A stretch of 64,000 nucleotides of DNA from Phaeosaccion multiseriatum (GCA_965112735.1 OZ218953.1:3844001-3908000); one strand, 5' to 3'; shown: positions 25,396-53,481, counted from the first letter of the stretch. Notes: generated by a model not told the origin, from the letters alone. Numbers and translations are program-made.

Positions 25396-28300
25396 GGCAG
25401 CGGCAGCGCATTGAGGGACCGCGTGGCCGTTATCGCGACCACAATCGCTACGAAGTCGTGCTGCAGATTGACGATCGGGAGGTGGGTGGGGGGGGTGGGG
25501 GGAGGGCAGTGCTTTATAATACCCACAACACATACTCGGAGCTTTGTGCCATCTGTGTTTTCATTGCGCATGCGTCCATCTCCCCATCTCCCATCCATTG
25601 CCATCCACACCCACACGCACACAATGCCATCCACACACTCACATCCACACGCTCCCATCCACTGCCATCCACTCTCAGCGCGGGGGGGAGCGTCACCACC
25701 TCCACGACTTGGGAGCCGTTTACCGGCAGGAGAACATCAACTTCGAAATGGCCAAACTAGGCGTGGGGGACTATCGCTGGATCATTCGGGAGACCCACTC
25801 ACGGCGGCCCGTTCTGAGGCTGCCTCTCGTGGTCGAGCGTAAGAGCCGTGTTGGTGCGTTTCTGGATCACTCCCCGCTTTCGTCGGAGCACTACGCACAA
25901 CTCTCTAACTGCCCCTCTTATCTTGCTGCTTGCTCTGGTGTGTTCCTTCCCTTGTTCTTCGCAGATGTAGCCGAAAGTCTGATTGATGGGAGATGGAATC
26001 GCCAGAAAGTGGAAATGGTACAGATGGGCTACGACATCGAGAAGGAAGCGCTGGAGGAGTGTAAGCTGCGCTATCTGATTGAAGGTGACCCTCGCCGTGC
26101 CAATCGCTTCCGGTGCAACTGTGGAAGAGGCTGCTTTGTGAGGTGTGGCCCTACCCAACCCACCGACACCGATGTGAACGAGGCCGTGGCGGGGCTCAAG
26201 GACGAGGGCTTTCAGGTGGCCACCACCCTCACCCTTCACGGAACGGCCAGGTACATGGCCAACGCCACCCGAGAGCTCGAGATTGCTTGGATCGGTGAGA
26301 GAGTCCCTCCTCCCCAGCCGGTGCATGCAGCTCCACTCGCTGCCGGAGAGGCCGTACGAGGCCGTGCCGTACTTTCTCCTGCAGGAGCTGCAGCTTTGGC
26401 CAGGGAAAATGCTGCTGCCGCTGCCGCTGCCGCTGCCAATGCAAATGCCGATGCAGGCGTTGCTGTTGGCGTGGGGGCGGGCACAAGGGGTGGGAGACAA
26501 GCCGCGGGGAGGGGGGGAGCGGCCGTTCGACCCCCGCCGCGCCCGCAGGTAACACCTGCCCGGGCTACTGCTGCACCTACTCGTGCTCCTGCCCCTGCCT
26601 CTTCCCGTGCCGGAGCGCATCGGGCTATGCCCGCAGGTGCTGTGGCGGCAGGAGGAGCAGCGAGAGAAGTGCACGTGCAAGATCTTTGTTCGTCGAGCGA
26701 CGAGGAGGAGGAGATTGTGCCAGTCACGCAAGATGCGTCCTTGAGACAAGGCAGGACTGGAGAGGCGGGAGATGGAAGTGACACGGATCTCGACTTGATG
26801 GGTGACGACGACGACGAGAACGAGGTGGAGGAGGAGGAGGATGGAGGAGAGCAAGGAGGGGGACCCAGGGCCGGGGCCGGAGCCGGGGCCGCTGACCCAC
26901 CAGACTTTGTGGACGTCGTGGACATGATTAGCGATGATGACACGACACAACCGCCGAAAGGCGCTCGCTCCGCTGGATCTAAAGGTACAGAACAGGAAGC
27001 GAGAGGGGCGGCGAGCTCTCCTGCGGCGGCGGCAGCAATGGAGGGAGGTGTTGGCAAGGCCGGGCATGAGGTGATCGAGCTCAGCGACAGTGATGAGGAC
27101 GATGTCGGTTTCGTGGGTGCTCCGCCTCTAGCCGCTGCTGCTCCTGCTGCTCCTGCTGCTCCTGCTGCTGCTGCTGCTGTTACCGCTGCTCCTGCTGATT
27201 TTGTAGATGACAGTGACGAGGAGTTTGCTGCCCTGGTCGCGACCACAACTTCCTTTCGACACAAGAGGCCACGGGAGGGAGACGGAGAGGCGGGCGGGCG
27301 GCGGGCAAGAGAAGGGGAAGACTTGCCGCCAATGGAAAGACAGGAGAGGGAGCAGGGAGGAGGGGATCTTCGTGATGCTGGCCAGCAGCAGCAGCAGCAG
27401 CAACACGAGGAAGAGGAGGAGGAGGAGGAGGAGGAGGAGGAGGAGGAGGAGGAGGAGGCGGTTCGTCGTCCGATGAAAGTTAAGGATCTCAAGGCGGTAC
27501 TCAAAGCCTGTGACCTGCGCACATCTGGCAACAAAGCAGAACTGTTGGCACGGTGGGGGCGGATGGAGAGTAACGCGACCGTTCCAGAGGATCACGTGGG
27601 TGGTAGGAGGAGAGCTGAAGCAGCCGCAGCCGGGCATGACGCTGCAGGGGCTGGTGCTGCGGCCGGACCCCCTCCACCTCCGCGCGTCACAGTCGCGAGC
27701 CTGAAAGCCGAGTGCGCAGCGAGGGGCGAGATAACGAGTGGCAACAAGGCTGAGCTCGAAGAGCGCCTCTTACTGCCTCGAAGGCCGCAGCTGCTTGTGG
27801 ATCGAGCCTTGGCCAACCCTAAGCTCTATGTGCCGAGGGACCGCTCCTGCCTGTTTGCCTTGCTCTGCGTGTTCGACCGAGAGGCCAGGAAGGCTCCTCC
27901 CAGGCTGGCCTTCACCAAACAGGAGCTCATCGTCATGTCTGAGGCCAGTGGCATTTTGAGTGAGGTGAGAGGGCCTTGACGCTTGAAAGGTTGAAATGTT
28001 CTCCTTCGGACTCCTTCGGAGTTGTGGTAACCGTATTCACCTCTTATGTTTGTGCCCCGCCTGGCGCCGCTCCTTCTTTTTCTCAGGACAACTCCATGTT
28101 CCCCAGGGAAGAGAACCCTCACTATGACGGGTGGTCCCTCGCCAACAAGAATCTGCTCGCCTCCACTGTGACTGAGGCCTCGCTCATGGCTAGGATTGGC
28201 CGCCAACGACCTGCCAGGTGAGCGCCCCTCCTCCCCAGTCCCACGTGCCACTTGCCACGCGTGCACTGATACTCAAACTCTCTCGTACAAGTGCTGCATC

Positions 28301-44727: not shown

Positions 44728-45901
44728 ATGAGGCGATTAGCCCTCTGCTCGCTCCGCGGGTACCCTCAGGGCTCCAGTCGGTGCCGCGGCTTCGGCGTCG
44801 AAAGAAGCCAAAGAAAAGAGATCAGCACGACGATTAAACAATGCGCATCTTCTGGCCGGATCCTTGACCCTTACATCCACCTGGACGAGGACCCGTCTCT
44901 TTTCAGCACGGAGGGCTTGAAGCTCAAAGCCTCGCGGATCCGCAGCCACGGGAAGTCCATGGTGGCTGCAGCGCACATCATGGTACGGGCAGAGGAAGTA
45001 GAAGTAGAAGCGGCCAAGAACGTTAATCCTTCATCCTTTCTCCTGTCCGACTCTTGTTTGTTTGCAGAAGTATGCCAAGGGATTCAAGGCCCAGGCATTC
45101 CCTCCCGTAGCGGAGGCGCTTTATGGCCAGGTGATGGAGGCCAATCGATTGGGCGACACCAGCCTCCTCGCTCCGGCTTGCACAGAGGGGCTCTACCAGG
45201 CCCTCAGCACCTCCTTTCTTCAACCCTCGAGACCAGCGGCGCGCGGGGTCGGGGGAGGGGGTGCATACGGTAAACGCCACAAAGGAAAGAGGAGAAGTCG
45301 TCCTACAAGTGGCCAAGGGAGTGGGGAAGGTGAGGGCGGAGGGGAGGAGAGACAGCTCGAACGTCGTACGGTGCTGCGCCTAATGGGGTTTGAGCAGAGG
45401 AGCAAGGTCTTGCAGATTCGCTACGCTTACACCACGAAAGGGGGGAGAATGACCAGCGGGCCTCTAAACAACATTGGTTGGGGACAAGTTACTTGCCAGA
45501 TCTTTTCTCGGAGGCGGAGAGTCCTTGTTGATTCGAAAGGAGAGGTGAGAGGGAGAGCGACGTACCATGGAGCTTGCAGGGAGGCTCACCCACTCTCACC
45601 CCCTCGCTCTTCTGCTGCTGCCTGTGAGTAGGAACACGAGCACGCCTTCTCGGAGGAGACTGCTGAGCTCACCAACCCCACCGTCGTGGTATTCGAGCTC
45701 GACTTTGCACGTGAGTCCCCAGCCCCCCTACCCCCCGACAAGTTACCATCAGCAGCACTCAAATCTGTCCGATTCCCTCTCTTACCACTTGTCGTGTCGC
45801 TCTCACTCGCAGGTGTGGACAGCGGGTGGAAGGTCGCGATGATGCAGGAGGTGGAGTGGACAGACAAGGATAGCCCACCCCCTGTTCATGCTCCCGCATA
45901 A
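44728..45901 (+). CDS. Mitochondrial Tim44-like-domain protein (mL45/MRPL45/Mba1-like)
   Basis: Arg-rich, acid-poor N-terminus; GRILDPY..PSLFSTEGLK; F...AEALYGQVMEA...D...L...CTE; QVTCQIFSR; VVFE..; WKV. Confidence 0.75.
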
Positions 45902-46282: not shown

Positions 46283-49200
46283 TCATCGAAGGCCTTTGAT
46301 GAGGTCGAGGATGCCGGTGCTTTGCCCCTTCCTCTTCCCTTTCCCGCCGCTCTTCGTCCCCTTGGTCAACGTGGCCTTCCCCTTGCCCTTGCCCTTTCTC
46401 ATCTTGGGTCCATTCGCTGCCTCGCGAGAGAAGATAGCCAGGCGCTCCTTGTGCCTCTTTTGCAACAGTTTCTCGAACTGCGCATCGTCGCGCTCACATC
46501 CCTTGTGCAGCAGCTCGTCCTGTGGCGTAGAAGGGAACGAGAGCGAAATGATTAAAAGCGTGAGTAAACGGGTGCGAAACTTCTTACAAAGTCGCCAGGA
46601 GGCTGGAATACAGTCCACAGTGCGTTGTGAGCATAGATAGTAGTAGTTAGCCAATTCCAGAGGAATGGAGCAAGAGCTCGTACAGAGTTGAGGCATGTTT
46701 GACTCTTACCAGCGCGCGCTGGAGAGCTTCGGAGGCGTGGATCTTCTTGTCCATTCGATTGCGCAGAGCGGTCATGAGCTGAGTGTGGTCCTTGTGACTA
46801 CTCTCCAGCTGCGCGAGGTACGTGGGGCCGGGTGGCAGCAAAGGGGGGTTTAGGTGCGAGACGAGTATGCATTGGTGCAAAGGGAGGCTGGACAAAGATT
46901 CCCTAGCTACCAAGGTGGGCTTTGGACAGGGGGATGTGTGAAGACAAAGAACAAGAAGAAGACGGCGAAGCAAGAAGAAGAGTGATGCAACCCTTGGGGA
47001 CTAACCTGCTGCTGGGCGTTTTGCGCTTCACTGAAGAGCATTTCTCCCTGCTTGGACACGTCGGCCGCGCTCGCCTTCCAGTGGTTCACAAAGGTCTCTT
47101 TGGTTCCTCGAAGGCACTCCGACCCCTCCGCTTTGATGCTCTTCACTTTCGCTTTGACTGCCTTCCTCTTCTTCCTCTCCGCCACCGCCAGCGCAGTTTC
47201 TTTGAGGGCTGCGAACAGAACATTCAGCTCTGCCTGGCTCTCTCCTTCTTCCTCCTCTTCATCTTCTTCCTCCTCCTCTTCTCCTTCATCTTCGTCTTCA
47301 TCCTCGTCGTCGTGCTCTTCATCGTTGCCGTTTCCGTCCGACTCAGACTCTTCATCAATCTCTTCAGTGCCGCGCGACTCCTCGATGTCGTCCTCCTCCT
47401 GCCCCTCGCCTTCCTCGTCTCCTCCCGCCCCCCGCCCATGATGCTCATCGTGATCGCTCTGTTCTTCATGTCCCTCGCTCCCATCGTCCTCTCCGTCCTC
47501 CTCGTCGACCTCCTCCCTGGCTCTCTTTCGTCGACCTTCTTCCTCCTCGTGGACCCCTCCCCCCTCCTCATCATCCTCCATGTCCTCATGTTCACTCGGC
47601 ACCTCGTCCTCCTCGTCCTCCACGTGTACACTGTGTTGAGCGAAGGCTGCATCCCCATCGCGACCCTTGCGCTGCTTTCGCTGTGGTCTGCTCCTCGGCG
47701 CAGGTGCAGGGGCCTTCGGTTCCTTTGTCCTGGGCGGCGTGCTGAGTGCCTCGCTGTCGTCTCCAAAAGGTACCGGCGTCGCCGAAGGAGAGGGGGGGGA
47801 GGCCAGGCCACTATCATCATAGGCGTCTAGTGACGGGGACGGTAGAGGCTCATCCTCCATCTCGTCCTGCTCCCCCCCATGGGGAAGCCTGTTGCTCTTA
47901 CTCTTTCGGGCGCCTGCTTTGCCTCTCCCGCCGCGTGCTGGCGCTCGTGCCGCGGTGGAGTCTGTCTTGGCAGCGCGGCTCTTCTTTGGCGGTGCGCGTC
48001 TGCTGCGCTTCTCCTTCTCCGGTTCCTTCTCAGCCTCGTCTTCCTGGACCTCCTTCTGTGGACGACGCTGACGGCCTGGCGAGGATTTCATCACTGCCGC
48101 AAACGACAGCCAAACAGAAGCATTGGAACAGAAGGTTATTTCACGAATGAGGCCAGACGAATCAGTTTCGGAGAAGGACCGGCAGGATGTAAGCACTCAA
48201 GTCGGTGCGTGAGCTATGCGTGCGCTCCCTCTCTCTTCGCTCTCACCTCCTCTGCGATTCTCGTCGCGTGCTTCTCGCCCCTTGGCTCCCTTCTTCTTCT
48301 TGCCACCAGCGGGCGCAGCGTCATGCTCGTCCTCGGATCGTTCTTCTGCTGAGACAAAAGAGGGCGGGTGGGTCGAAGACATTCGCAGTCGAGTGAATGA
48401 GAGCCACGTTCAAGTTTGACCAATCCTCTTCTCAATCCTCGCAACCCAGCAAGGCTGGAGAAGCCCATTCGAGAATGAGTCCCCTCGCTCCATGGGGACC
48501 GGGCCAGTGAGCCGGAGCGGCAAGTACCTTTGCGTAGCTGCCCAACTTCGGCACCATCGAAGCCGTTCGCCTCTTCGTCGGAATCGACTCGCTGCCCCCT
48601 TCTGGCCATCCTCGCACCCGCACCTGACTTCGCGGAGGGAGTCGTAGCGCCGCTCTTGCGCGAGCTCTCACCCGCGGCTCTCCTCCCCCTCTCGTCGCCA
48701 TGCTGCTGCTCCGGCAGGTCTTGTCTGGGTGGAGCCGTCCTCTGCGCGACGATGGAAGCTCGGCGGTCTTTGCCGTACAGGTTCTCCTCCAAGGTCGCCG
48801 TGATACTCTCCAGAGAAGGATACTCGGGGGAGTGCTGAGGTGAGAGTGGCAGGGGAGGTGCAGAGCGATCGATCCTTGTAAGAAAATACAAACAGGCGTG
48901 TGGCATCTACCTCGCTCTTCGCTCCTCACCTCATCGCCGCCCCAGCCGCCGCGCGGATTGCTCAGGCGAAAAAGCAGGTCGCATGTGGTCGTTCCTGGCG
49001 GGGGTCTCGTAATGCGAGACTCCAGGGAAGGAACGTCCTTGAATGAAACCTTCACCCGTACGCCGGTGCCCCCGTCGCCGCTTTTCCCGCCGCCGTCAAT
49101 CTCCGCCTCGTAGATGGCCTACGTGTAAGAAAGAGTGCGTGTGTGAGGAGACCGACTCGTCGCAGGCAAAGGTATTCAACGAGACACAACACACACAGCC

Positions 49201-51463
49201 ACAGCTGTCCCTCGACTACTTCTCTTTCTAGACTCCTTCCCTTCCAATACTCACACTAAAAGGCACAGTCACGGCGATGGCTTCGTCCGCCGATGCGCCC
49301 ACTTCGAAGACGATGTTCCCCGCTGGAGTGGACACATCCAACCAGGACCCCTCCTGAGCAGAAAGGGAGGTGGGAACGGGCCCTGGTTACACAGTCACAC
49401 TCTCTCACACGTCGGAACGTTCTAGGATTCATGCGCGCCTGAGCAAGCAAGCTACGCACCTCTCTTAGTAACTTTGTCCTGTGCTTGTGGTCCACGGTGG
49501 GCTCCCATGTGATGACCTTCGAGTGTTGATGCAGTGGAAAGGGGGGAGCGACAGTGCCCAGAGGGCAGCAGCAGCAGAAGGGTATGAGAGGGTTGCGAGT
49601 CGACGGACAGGGGTATAGAGCAAGCAAGGTAAGAAGGGGAGTACTTTGGGGCCCTTCTGCAGCAACTCTCAACGGAGGGGCTGGCTGGAGCTGCGCCGCG
49701 CTTGCCGCCCCTGCATCAAACGCGGCCTGACGCGGGGTTGAGGAGCCTCCTAGCTAGCAGAGCAGTGGCCGTTCTGAAGCTCCGTCCCCTCAGTATTTCC
49801 ATGTGCCGAGCCTCACCTGCGATACCTCTCCCAGCTCGGCGGCTTTCACACCACGGAAGGGGTCCTGGGAAGCGCCTTGGCTAGGGTTAGGATAGAGAGA
49901 GAGAGAGAGAAACCACGCGCGCACAGAGCCGGCCGGGGGAAGCAGCGGAGTGTGGGGAAGCAGCCGCGGAAGAGGAAAGAATTAGTGCCAGAGACAGATG
50001 TAAAAGGAAGGTACGCAGCCACCTTAGGATGGCTAGCGCGGGTTCTACTCCTTCTTTCCTCCTCACATATTATTGAGCTCGGTCTGCGGCATGTTGAACA
50101 AGTTGAGAAGGTCTCTGGCATCCTCCGCAAAGTAGCCAGAGCGCAGTGACCCGAGTTTCTCTCCCAGCGGGGACGGGCACGCCTTCTCGACAGCCGTCGC
50201 GGCCGCAGCCTCCTTGCCCTGCCAAGAGCAAGAGACAGGCAGTTCGGACGGGCAAGCAGAGTAAGACAGCTAGATTCCCCCAGCCACAGTGCACCCTCGC
50301 CTACCGCGAGGCACTCACTTCTCTCCTTCCGTATTCTTTACAACTTACCTTGTACACCCACTTTTTGTGCAGGCGGTAGAGAAGCTCCAGGACCGACAGC
50401 TGCACTCGGTAGGAGGGGAGTGAGCCCACCTTCCCAGCGAGCGCCAGTATCTGTCTCTCCTCCCCTGGTGTGCCCTCGCTCCCCGCGTCGGCGTCCTGAG
50501 GGTGGTCCTGCAGCTGCTTCAATAGGATGGAGCTCAGGCCCTTAAAGTTTGGGCGCCTCCCTAGACACATGCTGAGGAGCAAAGAAGCGCAACTCTCGAC
50601 CTTGCCTGCATCCTCCTCGGGGGCGTTCAGGAGGAGGGCCATAGTAGGCTCCACTACCTCAACCCGAATGAGCTGCGCCTGAGGGGGGTGGCATTGCAAG
50701 AGGAGGAAAGAAGGAGTGAGCGACTCGCCAGCCAGGCCTGGGCACGAGCCTTGCTCTCGTGGCGACGTGCCCCTGCTGGCTGTGTGCTCACCAAAATCAA
50801 GTCAAGAAGGTTTCCCCTGTCCTGTCTAGAGAGGAGCGGAGAGACCGTGCCACACGCGTTCGCCCGGGTTACTGCAACATCCACCTGCTGCGAGCTCGTC
50901 AGGTTCGAGTCATTCTCCCCCCCCCACTCATCCTCGCTGAGGTTAAGCAGCTCCACTCCGAGCTCCACCGCGGAGGAGAAGAGTGTGTTGAAATCGGCCC
51001 GCTCATGCTGGTCGGTGGAACGGGAGACGGCCGGAGGGGCCCGCAGCATCTCATAGAGGAACTGCCCCACCCCCAACACCACCACGCGAAGCTGTCACGA
51101 CGGTTGAAGGGACGAGCAAAACATGCGCGTGGGGTAGAGAGTCATAGGCCGTCTAAGAAGGGCGTTGTGAAGGCGCTAAGGGAGGCACAAGCGTTCTTCC
51201 CCCCGATCCTTTTAGCCTCCGCAGCAGCAAGCCCCTCTTGCTGCCCTTCAGACCCTCTACGCGGAGCCCCCCTCTCTGGCGTTGTGACGCACCTTAGACG
51301 CTGGGAGCTCCTCAACATCCTCCCCAAGTCTCCGGGCAGCCTCATCTGGGCTGCGCAGCTTGTTCTGAGCGCAGATGAGCTGCATCACCGCCCGCCACTC
51401 TGCCGCGGGCAGCTTTTGCCGAATGCGAGTCATGGTGCGCCCCGCCATAGAGGACAGCACCAT
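46283..51463 (-). CDS. SYCP2/Red1/ASY3-like meiotic axis protein (ARM-like + PH-like N-terminus, acidic disordered linker, C-terminal coiled-coil)
   Basis: Successive exons encode LAGKVGSLPSYRVQLSVLELLYRL, KLGSLRSGYFAEDARDLLNLFN and EGSWLDVSTPAGNIVFEVGASADEAIAVTVPFS. These match, in order, three SYCP2 ARM-PH blocks as I recall them. An E/D-rich linker and ~170 aa of coiled-coil follow. Confidence 0.65.
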
Positions 51464-51588
51464 CTTCCCACTAAAGCAAGTAGAAGATTTGGAAATGCCG
51501 CAGCGATTGCAGAAAGAGAGAGGAGCTTTGAAAAATTTCTAACGAAAAGGGTTCCAGTCGAGAGGCCGGCCATATAATATTTGCTTCA

Positions 51589-53361
51589 TCAGAACCTTCT
51601 CGCCCTCTTCTTGAAGCGCTCGTACGCGATGTGGTCAGTACTCATTTGTGGACCCCGCCCACCCGCCCCGCCCCTCCCCCCCCCCCGCCCCCCCCCTCTA
51701 CCATCTCCACCCCCTCCTCCCCGCCCGGGCCCAGGAGGGAGCCCCACCCCCGGTGCCTGCGGTGCGGGCCTGCCTTGCCCCTGTCCGTCTCTGCCCCCTC
51801 TTTGTCCTCCTCGGCCATAGTCCCCTCTCCCTCCCCCACCGCCGCCCCTGCCGCCGCCTCCACGCCCCGTCGTCCCCCTCCTCTCCGCCTGGCGCTCGTT
51901 CTCTCCCTTGAACATCTCCTTCAGCTCGATGGCCCTGTCTCGGGAGTGTTTGCTGTAGTTGGCGGCCAGCGACCCCATGACCACATTCTCGCCTCTCAAG
52001 CGCGCGTTCTCCATCCTCTGAATTCGCCGCTTCTCTTCCAGTGCCTGGTACGCACGCACGCAAAGATTCGACCGACAAGAGGAGAAGCGAAGGCAGGGAA
52101 AGGTTGATTGGAAGAGAGAGAAATAGTGCTGACGAGGTGTTGGACCAGACGAGCACGAGTAGTTTCATCTTTTCCAAAGCATTGTACGTCAGCCAGTAAA
52201 CACACTGCTGAAGAGGAGGGCAAGACAAGCAAGAGAGGAAGAGGTATCGAAGGGGAGAGCGGAGCGGAACCTACTCACCCTCGTTGCCTCCCTCGTCGCC
52301 TCCATATTCTTTATTCTAAAATCCATGGGAAGTGCCACTTCTGCAATACCTGCTCCGAATCAGTCGACGATGAAAGGGGGGGGGGGGGCAATGGTCGATG
52401 AGGAGGAGGTGGAACAGAAAGCGCGAGTACGGTGGACACAAACAAGACACCACAAGAGAAAGGGATAGAACTCGTCCCTTCCCACCAGCATCGCCTCTCC
52501 CTGGCCCCTGCGGCTCGGACGCATCCCAAGCCGCCACAGCCTCCATCCCGAGGTGACCTCACCTGTACCAAAGGCTATTTGAGCCCCCGAGCCCACTTCT
52601 CCGTCCATGGCTGCCTGCTCTGCTGCCGCCTTCTGACTCTCCGCCAACCTGTCCCGAAACTCCTCCGGAATGAGGTAGAGCTCGTCCTCCTCAGTCATGA
52701 GCTGCTTCTTGGTAGCCTCTATGCCTCCGCCCTTCTTGTCCTCCTCCGCCTGCTTCATGCCCATCTGCTCCTTCACGTAGGCCTCCATGAGCTTGTCATG
52801 CGACATGCCCGCGCTCCCCGTTGCCCCGAGCCCAGCCCCTGCGTCGAAGTGGCTGCCCAGCTGCTTCCCGACTCCGCCCTCCAGTCCACCCCCCCGCTTC
52901 GTTAATGGTCCTGCCTCCCCATCTGCTCCTGCCTCCTCCTCGCCCCCTTTCCCTTTCCCCTTTTGCCCTTTCCCGCCGCCTGATCCTACAGCCAGCAAGT
53001 CCCGTGCTCCCATGCCCTTGCTCCTTCTCCTTAGCATCTGTTCTTCCCGTAGGTCGGCAAGCACCGCCGCGCTGATTCCCTCGTCCTCCCCCTCCTCCTC
53101 CTCCTCCTCTCCTCCTCCCTTCCTCTCGCCATCGGCCTCCTCTTTACTCCCATTCCCCTCCACACCGCCATTCTCCTCCCCCTCCCCACCGCCACCAGTA
53201 CTACTCGCAGTAACCCCCCCTTTCCTGCTGTCTTCTTCTTTGCCAACTCCCGTAGCTGATGAAGTGGACTCCTCCCTCTTCTTGGATCTAAATTGCTTCT
53301 TCGCCCCACCCTTCTTCTTCTTGAACGTCACAACGGGGACCTCTTCTCCCTCCTCCTCCAT
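51589..53361 (-). CDS. C9orf78/Tls1 (HCA59) spliceosome-associated protein
   Basis: LREEQMLRRRSKG; DKLMEAYVKEQM; EDELYLIPE; G|IAEVALPMDFRIKNMEAT; AANY; terminal STDHIAYERFKKRARRF*. Confidence 0.88.
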
Positions 53362-53481
53362 AGTACTAACGATCAAGCAATAGGACCGAGGTAGGGAGGG
53401 AGAGAGGAGAGGAGAGGAAAGGGGTTTGCCCCCTCACAGGTGTCCTTACTGAAATTGAAATTTTTCGCTTTCACCTTCCTT

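Follow-up and report, generated by a model that had tools for sequence, protein, structure and literature searches.

Does the minus strand of this algal DNA encode a core component of the meiotic chromosome axis? The stretch in question, hereafter the window, is the whole 64,000-nt (64-kb) segment of Phaeosaccion multiseriatum that was analysed (GCA_965112735.1, OZ218953.1:3844001-3908000), and the question was raised by an initial annotation in which three ordered peptide blocks were read as traces of a spliced SYCP2/Red1/ASY3-type gene, referred to here as the axis gene. Collinear family signatures common to published SYCP2-type proteins, strongest with those of the ochrophytes Chattonella and Ectocarpus, bear out that identity: by sequence comparison, the locus is likely to encode a core protein of the meiotic chromosome axis, of the SYCP2 type and corresponding to the SYCP2-like proteins of ochrophytes (Ectocarpus, Cladosiphon, Chattonella, Ochromonas). 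The homology to the family rests on the tests made here; fold, splicing, expression and every interaction are presumed.

Gene structure

Coordinates are counted along the 64-kb window, and the gene was read by three-frame translation of the minus strand between 46200 and 51700. Joining open stretches by reading the sequence gave a single open frame running from 51463 to 46283, with 13 exons, 1064 amino acids (aa), no internal stop codons and 12 introns of 95-300 nt, all 12 with GT-AG ends (Table 1). GC content at codon positions 1, 2 and 3 is 0.67, 0.46 and 0.71 overall; coding bias of this kind is visible in each of the 13 exons, and the introns are flat at 0.57. Because the list of open reading frames (ORFs) for the locus holds only fragments plus one low-complexity open frame of 429 aa, the gene is not visible as a single ORF, and it is 'cryptic' solely through its split into 13 exons. 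An exon with a length of 1 mod 3 is required between exon 4 and exons 6/7, so that exon 5 restores the frame. The three peptide blocks all lie on the minus strand, in three different reading frames: SYRVQLSVLELLYRL at 50414-50370 in exon 3, FAEDARDLLNLFN at 50131-50093 in exon 4 (placed earlier at about 50085-50125), and SWLDVSTPAGNIVFEVG..AVTVP (SWLDVSTPAGNIVFEVGASADEAIAVTVP) at 49347-49261, inside an exon with exactly the limits first claimed for it (49353-49255).

Family signatures in the axis gene

SYCP2-type proteins are defined by two criteria together, one of which is a C-terminal coiled coil (Tromer et al. 2021, bioRxiv 10.1101/2021.02.06.430040). In File S2 of that study human SYCP2 reads GDYDLQVGIVEALCRM, then EFETDCRIFLNLVN, then the PH block, so that the human motifs given in the initial annotation are correct as printed; their columns correspond to SYRVQLSVLELLYRL (for GDYDLQVGIVEALCRM) and YFAEDARDLLNLFN (for EFETDCRIFLNLVN) in the axis gene. 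Two variants present in the axis gene recur at the matching columns of other members (Tromer et al. 2021): ELLYR in KKT17 of kinetoplastids and in ASY3 of Monoraphidium, and ARDLLN, at the column of the second signature (signature B), in dipteran SYCP2. The alignment for stramenopiles, alveolates and Rhizaria (SAR) in the same study includes the ochrophyte algae Chattonella (HYPIQEMLSEFLYRLSRVWKK ... SEFESGLRELLNTMN) and Ectocarpus (DHRTQELVFEALYRLWKVWKK), and at the same columns the axis gene reads SYRVQLSVLELLYRLHKKWVY ... GYFAEDARDLLNLFN.

Short family segments taken at the motif columns were scanned against all six frames of the window (~128,000 positions). Segment A of Chattonella has its top match in the window at 50414 (score 38; 127,876 six-frame positions) and segment B at 50155 (score 39), and shuffles equal each of these scores in 0.5% of trials. 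The top match of Ectocarpus segment A is again at 50414, with a score of 43 that none of 200 shuffles equals. Human segments give lower scores: segment B has its top match at 50131 (score 31; equalled by shuffles in 3% of trials), and for segment A the gene site is second (29), the top match (35) lying elsewhere in the window. Two patterns drawn from family members, [YF]..Q....E.[LIV][YWFC]R and F....R..LN..N, each have one match in the window, expected 0.007 and 0.010 times, respectively; both matches are in the axis gene, in the right order.

The best four-segment collinear Chattonella chain in the window is also the axis gene, with a score of 123 (shuffles 85.3 ± 5.1, maximum 107 in 300; z 7.4). 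Its four segments come from a single Chattonella protein and fall, in sequence, in exons 3, 4, 8 and 13, linking the N-terminal part of the gene with the C-terminal part. Taken singly, the PH member of the chain, Chattonella DIENLELLTQRPP, ranks second of 127,924 positions at 49037 (gene DVPSLESRITRPP, 49037-48999, exon 8), at the same alignment columns, with a score that shuffles equal in 13% of trials. The terminal motif QSTGILDLIKGLR ranks 23rd of 127,930 positions for Ectocarpus ...STSIASLLSHL (at 46324) and 54th of 127,930 for Chattonella ...QSILSLLK (at 46330), neither of which is significant window-wide, and it would support family membership only by standing at the expected place. Membership of the SYCP2-type family was thus found at the level of motifs (top segment matches, patterns and chain) and not through an E-value from a full hidden Markov model.

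Layout of the predicted protein

The layout proposed for the gene, a folded N-terminus, a disordered linker and a helical C-terminus as in SYCP2, recurs in composition and periodicity. Residues 1-450 contain 13-22 hydrophobic residues per 50, falling to 1-9 per 50 in residues 451-875, which are first basic and then extremely acidic (76 Asp/Glu in aa 751-900). After this disordered linker of some 420 residues, from aa 876 onward, the protein becomes more hydrophobic again; its strongest 3.5-residue (heptad) periodicity is at aa 918-995, within a proline-free segment (aa 757-1023). A C-terminal coiled coil is indicated by this absence of proline together with the periodicity, a crude measure rather than a dedicated predictor.

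Within the N-terminal region, AlphaFold2 models of single exons contained helices only, four helices for exon 2 (predicted local distance difference test, pLDDT, 54) and five helices for exon 3 (pLDDT 50), both of low confidence. The nearest named Atlas clusters of exon 3 among protein-language-model neighbours are ARM/HEAT-type families (0.82-0.85), a lead only, and an Atlas feature search with exon 8 returned nothing. Exon 6 would supply the first PH strand, comparable, as judged by eye, to RVFTFP of human SYCP2.

In the linker, KDRRASIVAQR (48771-48739, aa 476-486, exon 9) is a candidate HORMAD closure motif by position and charge pattern only. It is a patch of basic-hydrophobic-basic character that immediately follows the folded domain, the place where closure motifs have been described for SYCP2, Red1 and ASY3 (West et al. 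2019); such motifs have no searchable consensus (West et al. 2019).

Table 1 Coding region, exons and protein features of the axis gene (positions in the window; slashes mark exon-intron boundaries; GC3, GC content at third codon positions).
Feature	Position	Strand	Residues (aa)	Remarks
Whole coding region	46283..51463	-		ATG at 51463; stop TGA 46285-46283
Exon 1	51293..51463	-	1-57	ATG start; donor AAG/GTGCGT; GC3 0.74
Exon 2	50792..51091	-	58-157	Helical; splice sites read from sequence
Exon 3	50349..50678	-	158-267	Helical; closes ARM-like region
Exon 4	50067..50218	-	268-318	Ends in phase 2; acceptor TGGCAG/; donor AT/GTGAGG directly before in-frame TGA
Exon 5	49817..49880	-		64 nt; frame-restoring; strong pyrimidine tract, TAG acceptor
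Exon 6	49460..49516	-	340-358	VITWEP...; 57 nt; weak acceptor, good donor; GC3 0.74; least certain exon
Exon 7	49255..49353	-	359-391	Carries third block, SWLDV...AVTVPFS
Exon 8	48930..49118	-	392-454	Strand-rich portion of presumed PH-like domain
Exon 9	48528..48834	-	455-557	Probable last PH helix SLESITATLEENLYGK, then onset of disordered linker
Exon 10	48247..48348	-	557-591	Basic linker; enters and leaves in phase 1; splice sites canonical
Exon 11	47006..48093	-	591-953	Basic linker, then very acidic tract, then onset of C-terminal helical region
Exon 12	46710..46808	-	954-986	Helical
Exon 13	46283..46519	-	987-1064	Plus stop; end of helical region, K/G-rich tail, terminal motif QSTGILDLIKGLR
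Signature A	50352..50414	-	246-266	SYRVQLSVLELLYRLHKKWVY; aligns with human SYCP2 GDYDLQVGIVEALCRM and Chattonella HYPIQEMLSEFLYRLSRVWKK
Signature B	50093..50155	-	289-309	LGSLRSGYFAEDARDLLNLFN; fits family pattern F....R..LN..N
Very acidic tract	47240..47632	-	745-875	Within exon 11
C-terminal helical region	46418..47239	-	876-1020	Presumed coiled coil; across two introns

Database searches and alternative explanations

A number of results weigh against the assignment to the SYCP2 type. The segments used in the scans were picked at motif columns that had been quoted earlier, partly by eye, so that the shuffles correct for position in the window and not fully for the choice of segment. The third peptide block, taken by itself, did not exceed chance: human FWIDFN...AVTVP against SWLDV...AVTVP ranks third of 1643 open-frame pieces with a score of 36, and shuffles average 37.6. 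Blocks 1 and 2 do stand above chance in the window-wide scans, patterns and chain. Nor was a 44-mer from the Chattonella PH region significant against the window.

Database searches were made by single exon or open-frame block, and the splitting of the PH domain over exons 6-9 weakens any exon-level test of similarity. Among seven exon-holding open-frame blocks compared with Pfam, nothing relevant was matched and no SYCP2 family appeared even at E-values up to 10, a weak negative given such short queries; the suggested match to the SYCP2_ARLD and SYCP2_SLD models failed to appear, and because these models do not match the exons the gene is filed under the wider SYCP2-type family and not as metazoan SYCP2 proper. 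Exons 2, 3, 4, 7 and 8 gave only chance matches (E 0.18 or above) and no SYCP2 chain among PDB sequences, a set in which 5IWZ, the entry for the N-terminus of mouse SYCP2, is expected to be present, and phmmer with exon 3 found no genuine relative among 1.84 billion representative proteins. The fold and the gene model add further reservations: the ARM+PH fold is presumed, the exon-level models (pLDDT 50-54) being too weak for a fold search, and the splice junctions are predicted from the DNA alone, with a weak acceptor at exon 6. At the level of the family, none of the SAR SYCP2-like proteins has ever been localised, and their need for validation is stated by Tromer et al. (2021).

The phmmer search with exon 3 returned a single match (E 1.4e-4), to a bacterial PKD-repeat protein, which was rejected as spurious since it matches a Gly/Asp-rich loop.

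The missing exon-level matches in Pfam, PDB sequences and the 1.84 billion representatives would be accounted for if the locus encoded an unrelated, lineage-specific ARM-repeat protein with a disordered, acidic linker and a helical tail, such as a scaffold binding chromatin or histones, whose likeness to SYCP2 came from short motifs shared by chance or convergence. ARM repeats are generic, as are coiled coils, and false positives are a danger of which Tromer et al. (2021) warn; the PH block alone is not significant, and the 130-residue acidic tract would suit a histone chaperone too. Such a protein is nevertheless improbable here. Two signatures with expected counts of 0.007 and 0.010 each occur a single time, next to each other in the axis gene and in the proper order, the four-segment chain exceeds shuffles by 7 standard deviations, and the best matches are to ochrophyte members, as relatedness predicts.

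An important error in the gene model is likewise improbable, whether two neighbours (an ARM-PH gene and a disordered coiled-coil gene) have been joined or a decaying pseudogene has had its frame rescued by the choice of splice sites. At 64 and 57 nt, exons 5 and 6 are short, and the acceptor of exon 6 is weak; the 126 nt between the stop of the upstream gene (51589) and the ATG of the axis gene are very tight for a 3′ untranslated region and a promoter; and eight long ORFs from the window, all lying outside the spliced N-terminal part, had no identical annotated protein when looked up, leaving no public annotation for comparison. These features are outweighed by twelve canonical introns of 95-300 nt that yield one stop-free frame, by a coding bias seen in 13/13 exons and absent from introns, and by the segments of one Chattonella protein that run through exons 3, 4, 8 and 13 in order; the initial annotation had, independently, reached the same limits (46283-51463) as the ATG and stop of the 13-exon model.

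Comparison with known SYCP2-type proteins

The axis gene, read as encoding an SYCP2-type protein, is nearest to the ochrophyte members, a nearness judged from short segments at the motif columns. At 1064 aa its product is similar in size to the SYCP2-like proteins of Chattonella subsalsa (982 aa), Ectocarpus siliculosus (1203 aa) and Cladosiphon okamuranus (1207 aa), the Ochromonas sequence being a fragment (Files S2/S3), and the order of parts is the same. Shared with these proteins are ..Y..Q....E.LYRL.+.W.., followed about 30-37 residues on by F....R..LN..N; a ..LE..(T/V)..PP segment in the PH region; and, after the helical C-terminus, a terminal S/T-x-I-x-x-L-(L/I)-x-x-L motif. The axis gene differs from the ochrophyte members in the length and make-up of two parts, the acidic tract and the loop that separates signature B from the PH region, and outside the signatures it is too diverged for exon-level phmmer.

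Mammalian SYCP2 has N-terminal ARM-like and PH/Spt16M-like domains (PDB 5IWZ), a closure motif at 395-414 and a C-terminal coiled coil formed with SYCP3. The axis protein is one third shorter and resembles it in layout, a folded N-terminus being joined through a disordered linker to C-terminal helices. By analogy, Red1 and ASY3 would share the functional model, that of an axis core in which a HORMAD closure motif and a disordered centre are combined with a C-terminal coiled coil forming tetramers and filaments. In Red1 and ASY3 the disordered centre bears a motif that binds cohesin; for the axis protein, any closure or cohesin motif is no more than a guess. The ARM-PH module is lost from ASY3 of seed plants (Tromer et al. 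2021), unlike in the axis gene, which keeps an N-terminal region presumed to be folded.

KKT17 and KKT18 belong to the same SYCP2-type family and share with the axis gene the ELLYR variant of signature A (FFLLQCIELLYRV); they are kinetochore proteins of organisms without canonical kinetochores, and nothing suggests such a role for the axis gene. A true but diverged SYCP2-type homologue that is no longer, or not only, meiotic and has been taken over for another chromosomal role, for example as a scaffold of mitotic chromosomes or centromeres with the 130-residue acidic tract acting on histones, has a precedent in kinetoplastid KKT16-18 (Tromer et al. 2021) and would suit the unusually acidic linker, but is very unlikely here, as the kinetoplastid takeover of SYCP2/3 relatives accompanies gene duplication and the loss of canonical kinetochores, kinetochores are canonical or likely canonical in the rows of Table S2 that were read (diatoms, Nannochloropsis, Aureococcus, Ochromonas, Cladosiphon, Saprolegnia; Tromer et al. 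2021), HOP1-like genes are listed beside SYCP2-like genes for Ochromonas and Cladosiphon in the same table, and the axis gene is single-copy within the window, where nothing points away from meiosis.

Proposed mode of action

Knowledge of Red1, SYCP2 and ASY3 suggests how the protein would act as a meiotic axis core (West et al. 2019; Mendez Diaz et al. 2026 preprint): its C-terminal helices would assemble into tetramers, joining end to end into an axis filament, and short motifs in the linker would recruit a meiotic HORMA-domain protein, perhaps also cohesin. KDRRASIVAQR, just after the folded domain, may be the motif that recruits the HORMA-domain protein, and the ARM-PH module at the N-terminus may offer a further binding platform. 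The gene would be active in meiotic prophase, from which a sexual cycle for the alga would follow.

Neighbouring features of the window

The nearest upstream gene on the same strand (51589-52059, -) has an RGG/Gly-rich C-terminus (...YERFKKRARRF), ends with a stop at 51589 and has no Pfam match. Between it and the axis gene, a 47-codon upstream ORF (MAGLSTGTLFVRNF..., 51430-51573, -) begins 110 nt ahead of the main ATG and runs across it in another frame; should it fall within the 5′ leader, it may have a regulatory role. A 302-aa ORF with Leu/Phe runs (46922-47830, +) lies on the strand opposite the acidic tract of exon 11; it mirrors a coding strand rich in GAG/GAA and most likely is no gene.

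Further out, an ORF converging on the 3′ end of the axis gene (45062-45628, +) has a weak Tim44-like match (PF04280, E 1.8e-3, below cut-off) and perhaps encodes a mitochondrial ribosomal or import protein, and a Gly/Glu/Lys-rich ORF at 52363-53376 (-) weakly matches Hep_59 (PF07052, E 5.5e-4), its 21 bits falling short of the 22.7 cut-off. A Mus81-like ORF (25748-27976, +) contains two SAP domains (E 2.7e-15) and has a weak ERCC4 match; a word-based protein search with it gave no relative at E 1e-5, the list of candidates having probably been crowded by low-complexity words.

Implications for the alga and the family

Since SYCP2-like genes have already been listed for brown algae, a raphidophyte and a chrysophyte, the axis gene is a further member of a known family, and for specialists it is expected rather than surprising. 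Interest would rise if the alga belongs to a class in which the SYCP2-like gene is thought to be missing. No such gene is listed for diatoms, Nannochloropsis or Aureococcus, the last two of which keep HOP1 (Table S2 of Tromer et al. 2021), and a further ochrophyte sequence with the signature LYRL.+.W ... F....R..LN..N could contribute to a profile with which the 'missing' gene would be detected in these groups or excluded from them.

For the organism itself, the initial annotation had spoken of cryptic sex or of repurposed machinery, a suggestion that goes beyond anything measured here; machinery for sex has probably been retained in the alga. The presence of an intact axis-core gene marks an alga as still able to build meiotic chromosome axes, which matters for the breeding and genetics of microalgae, and it makes a sexual cycle probable in this alga, even if none has been seen.

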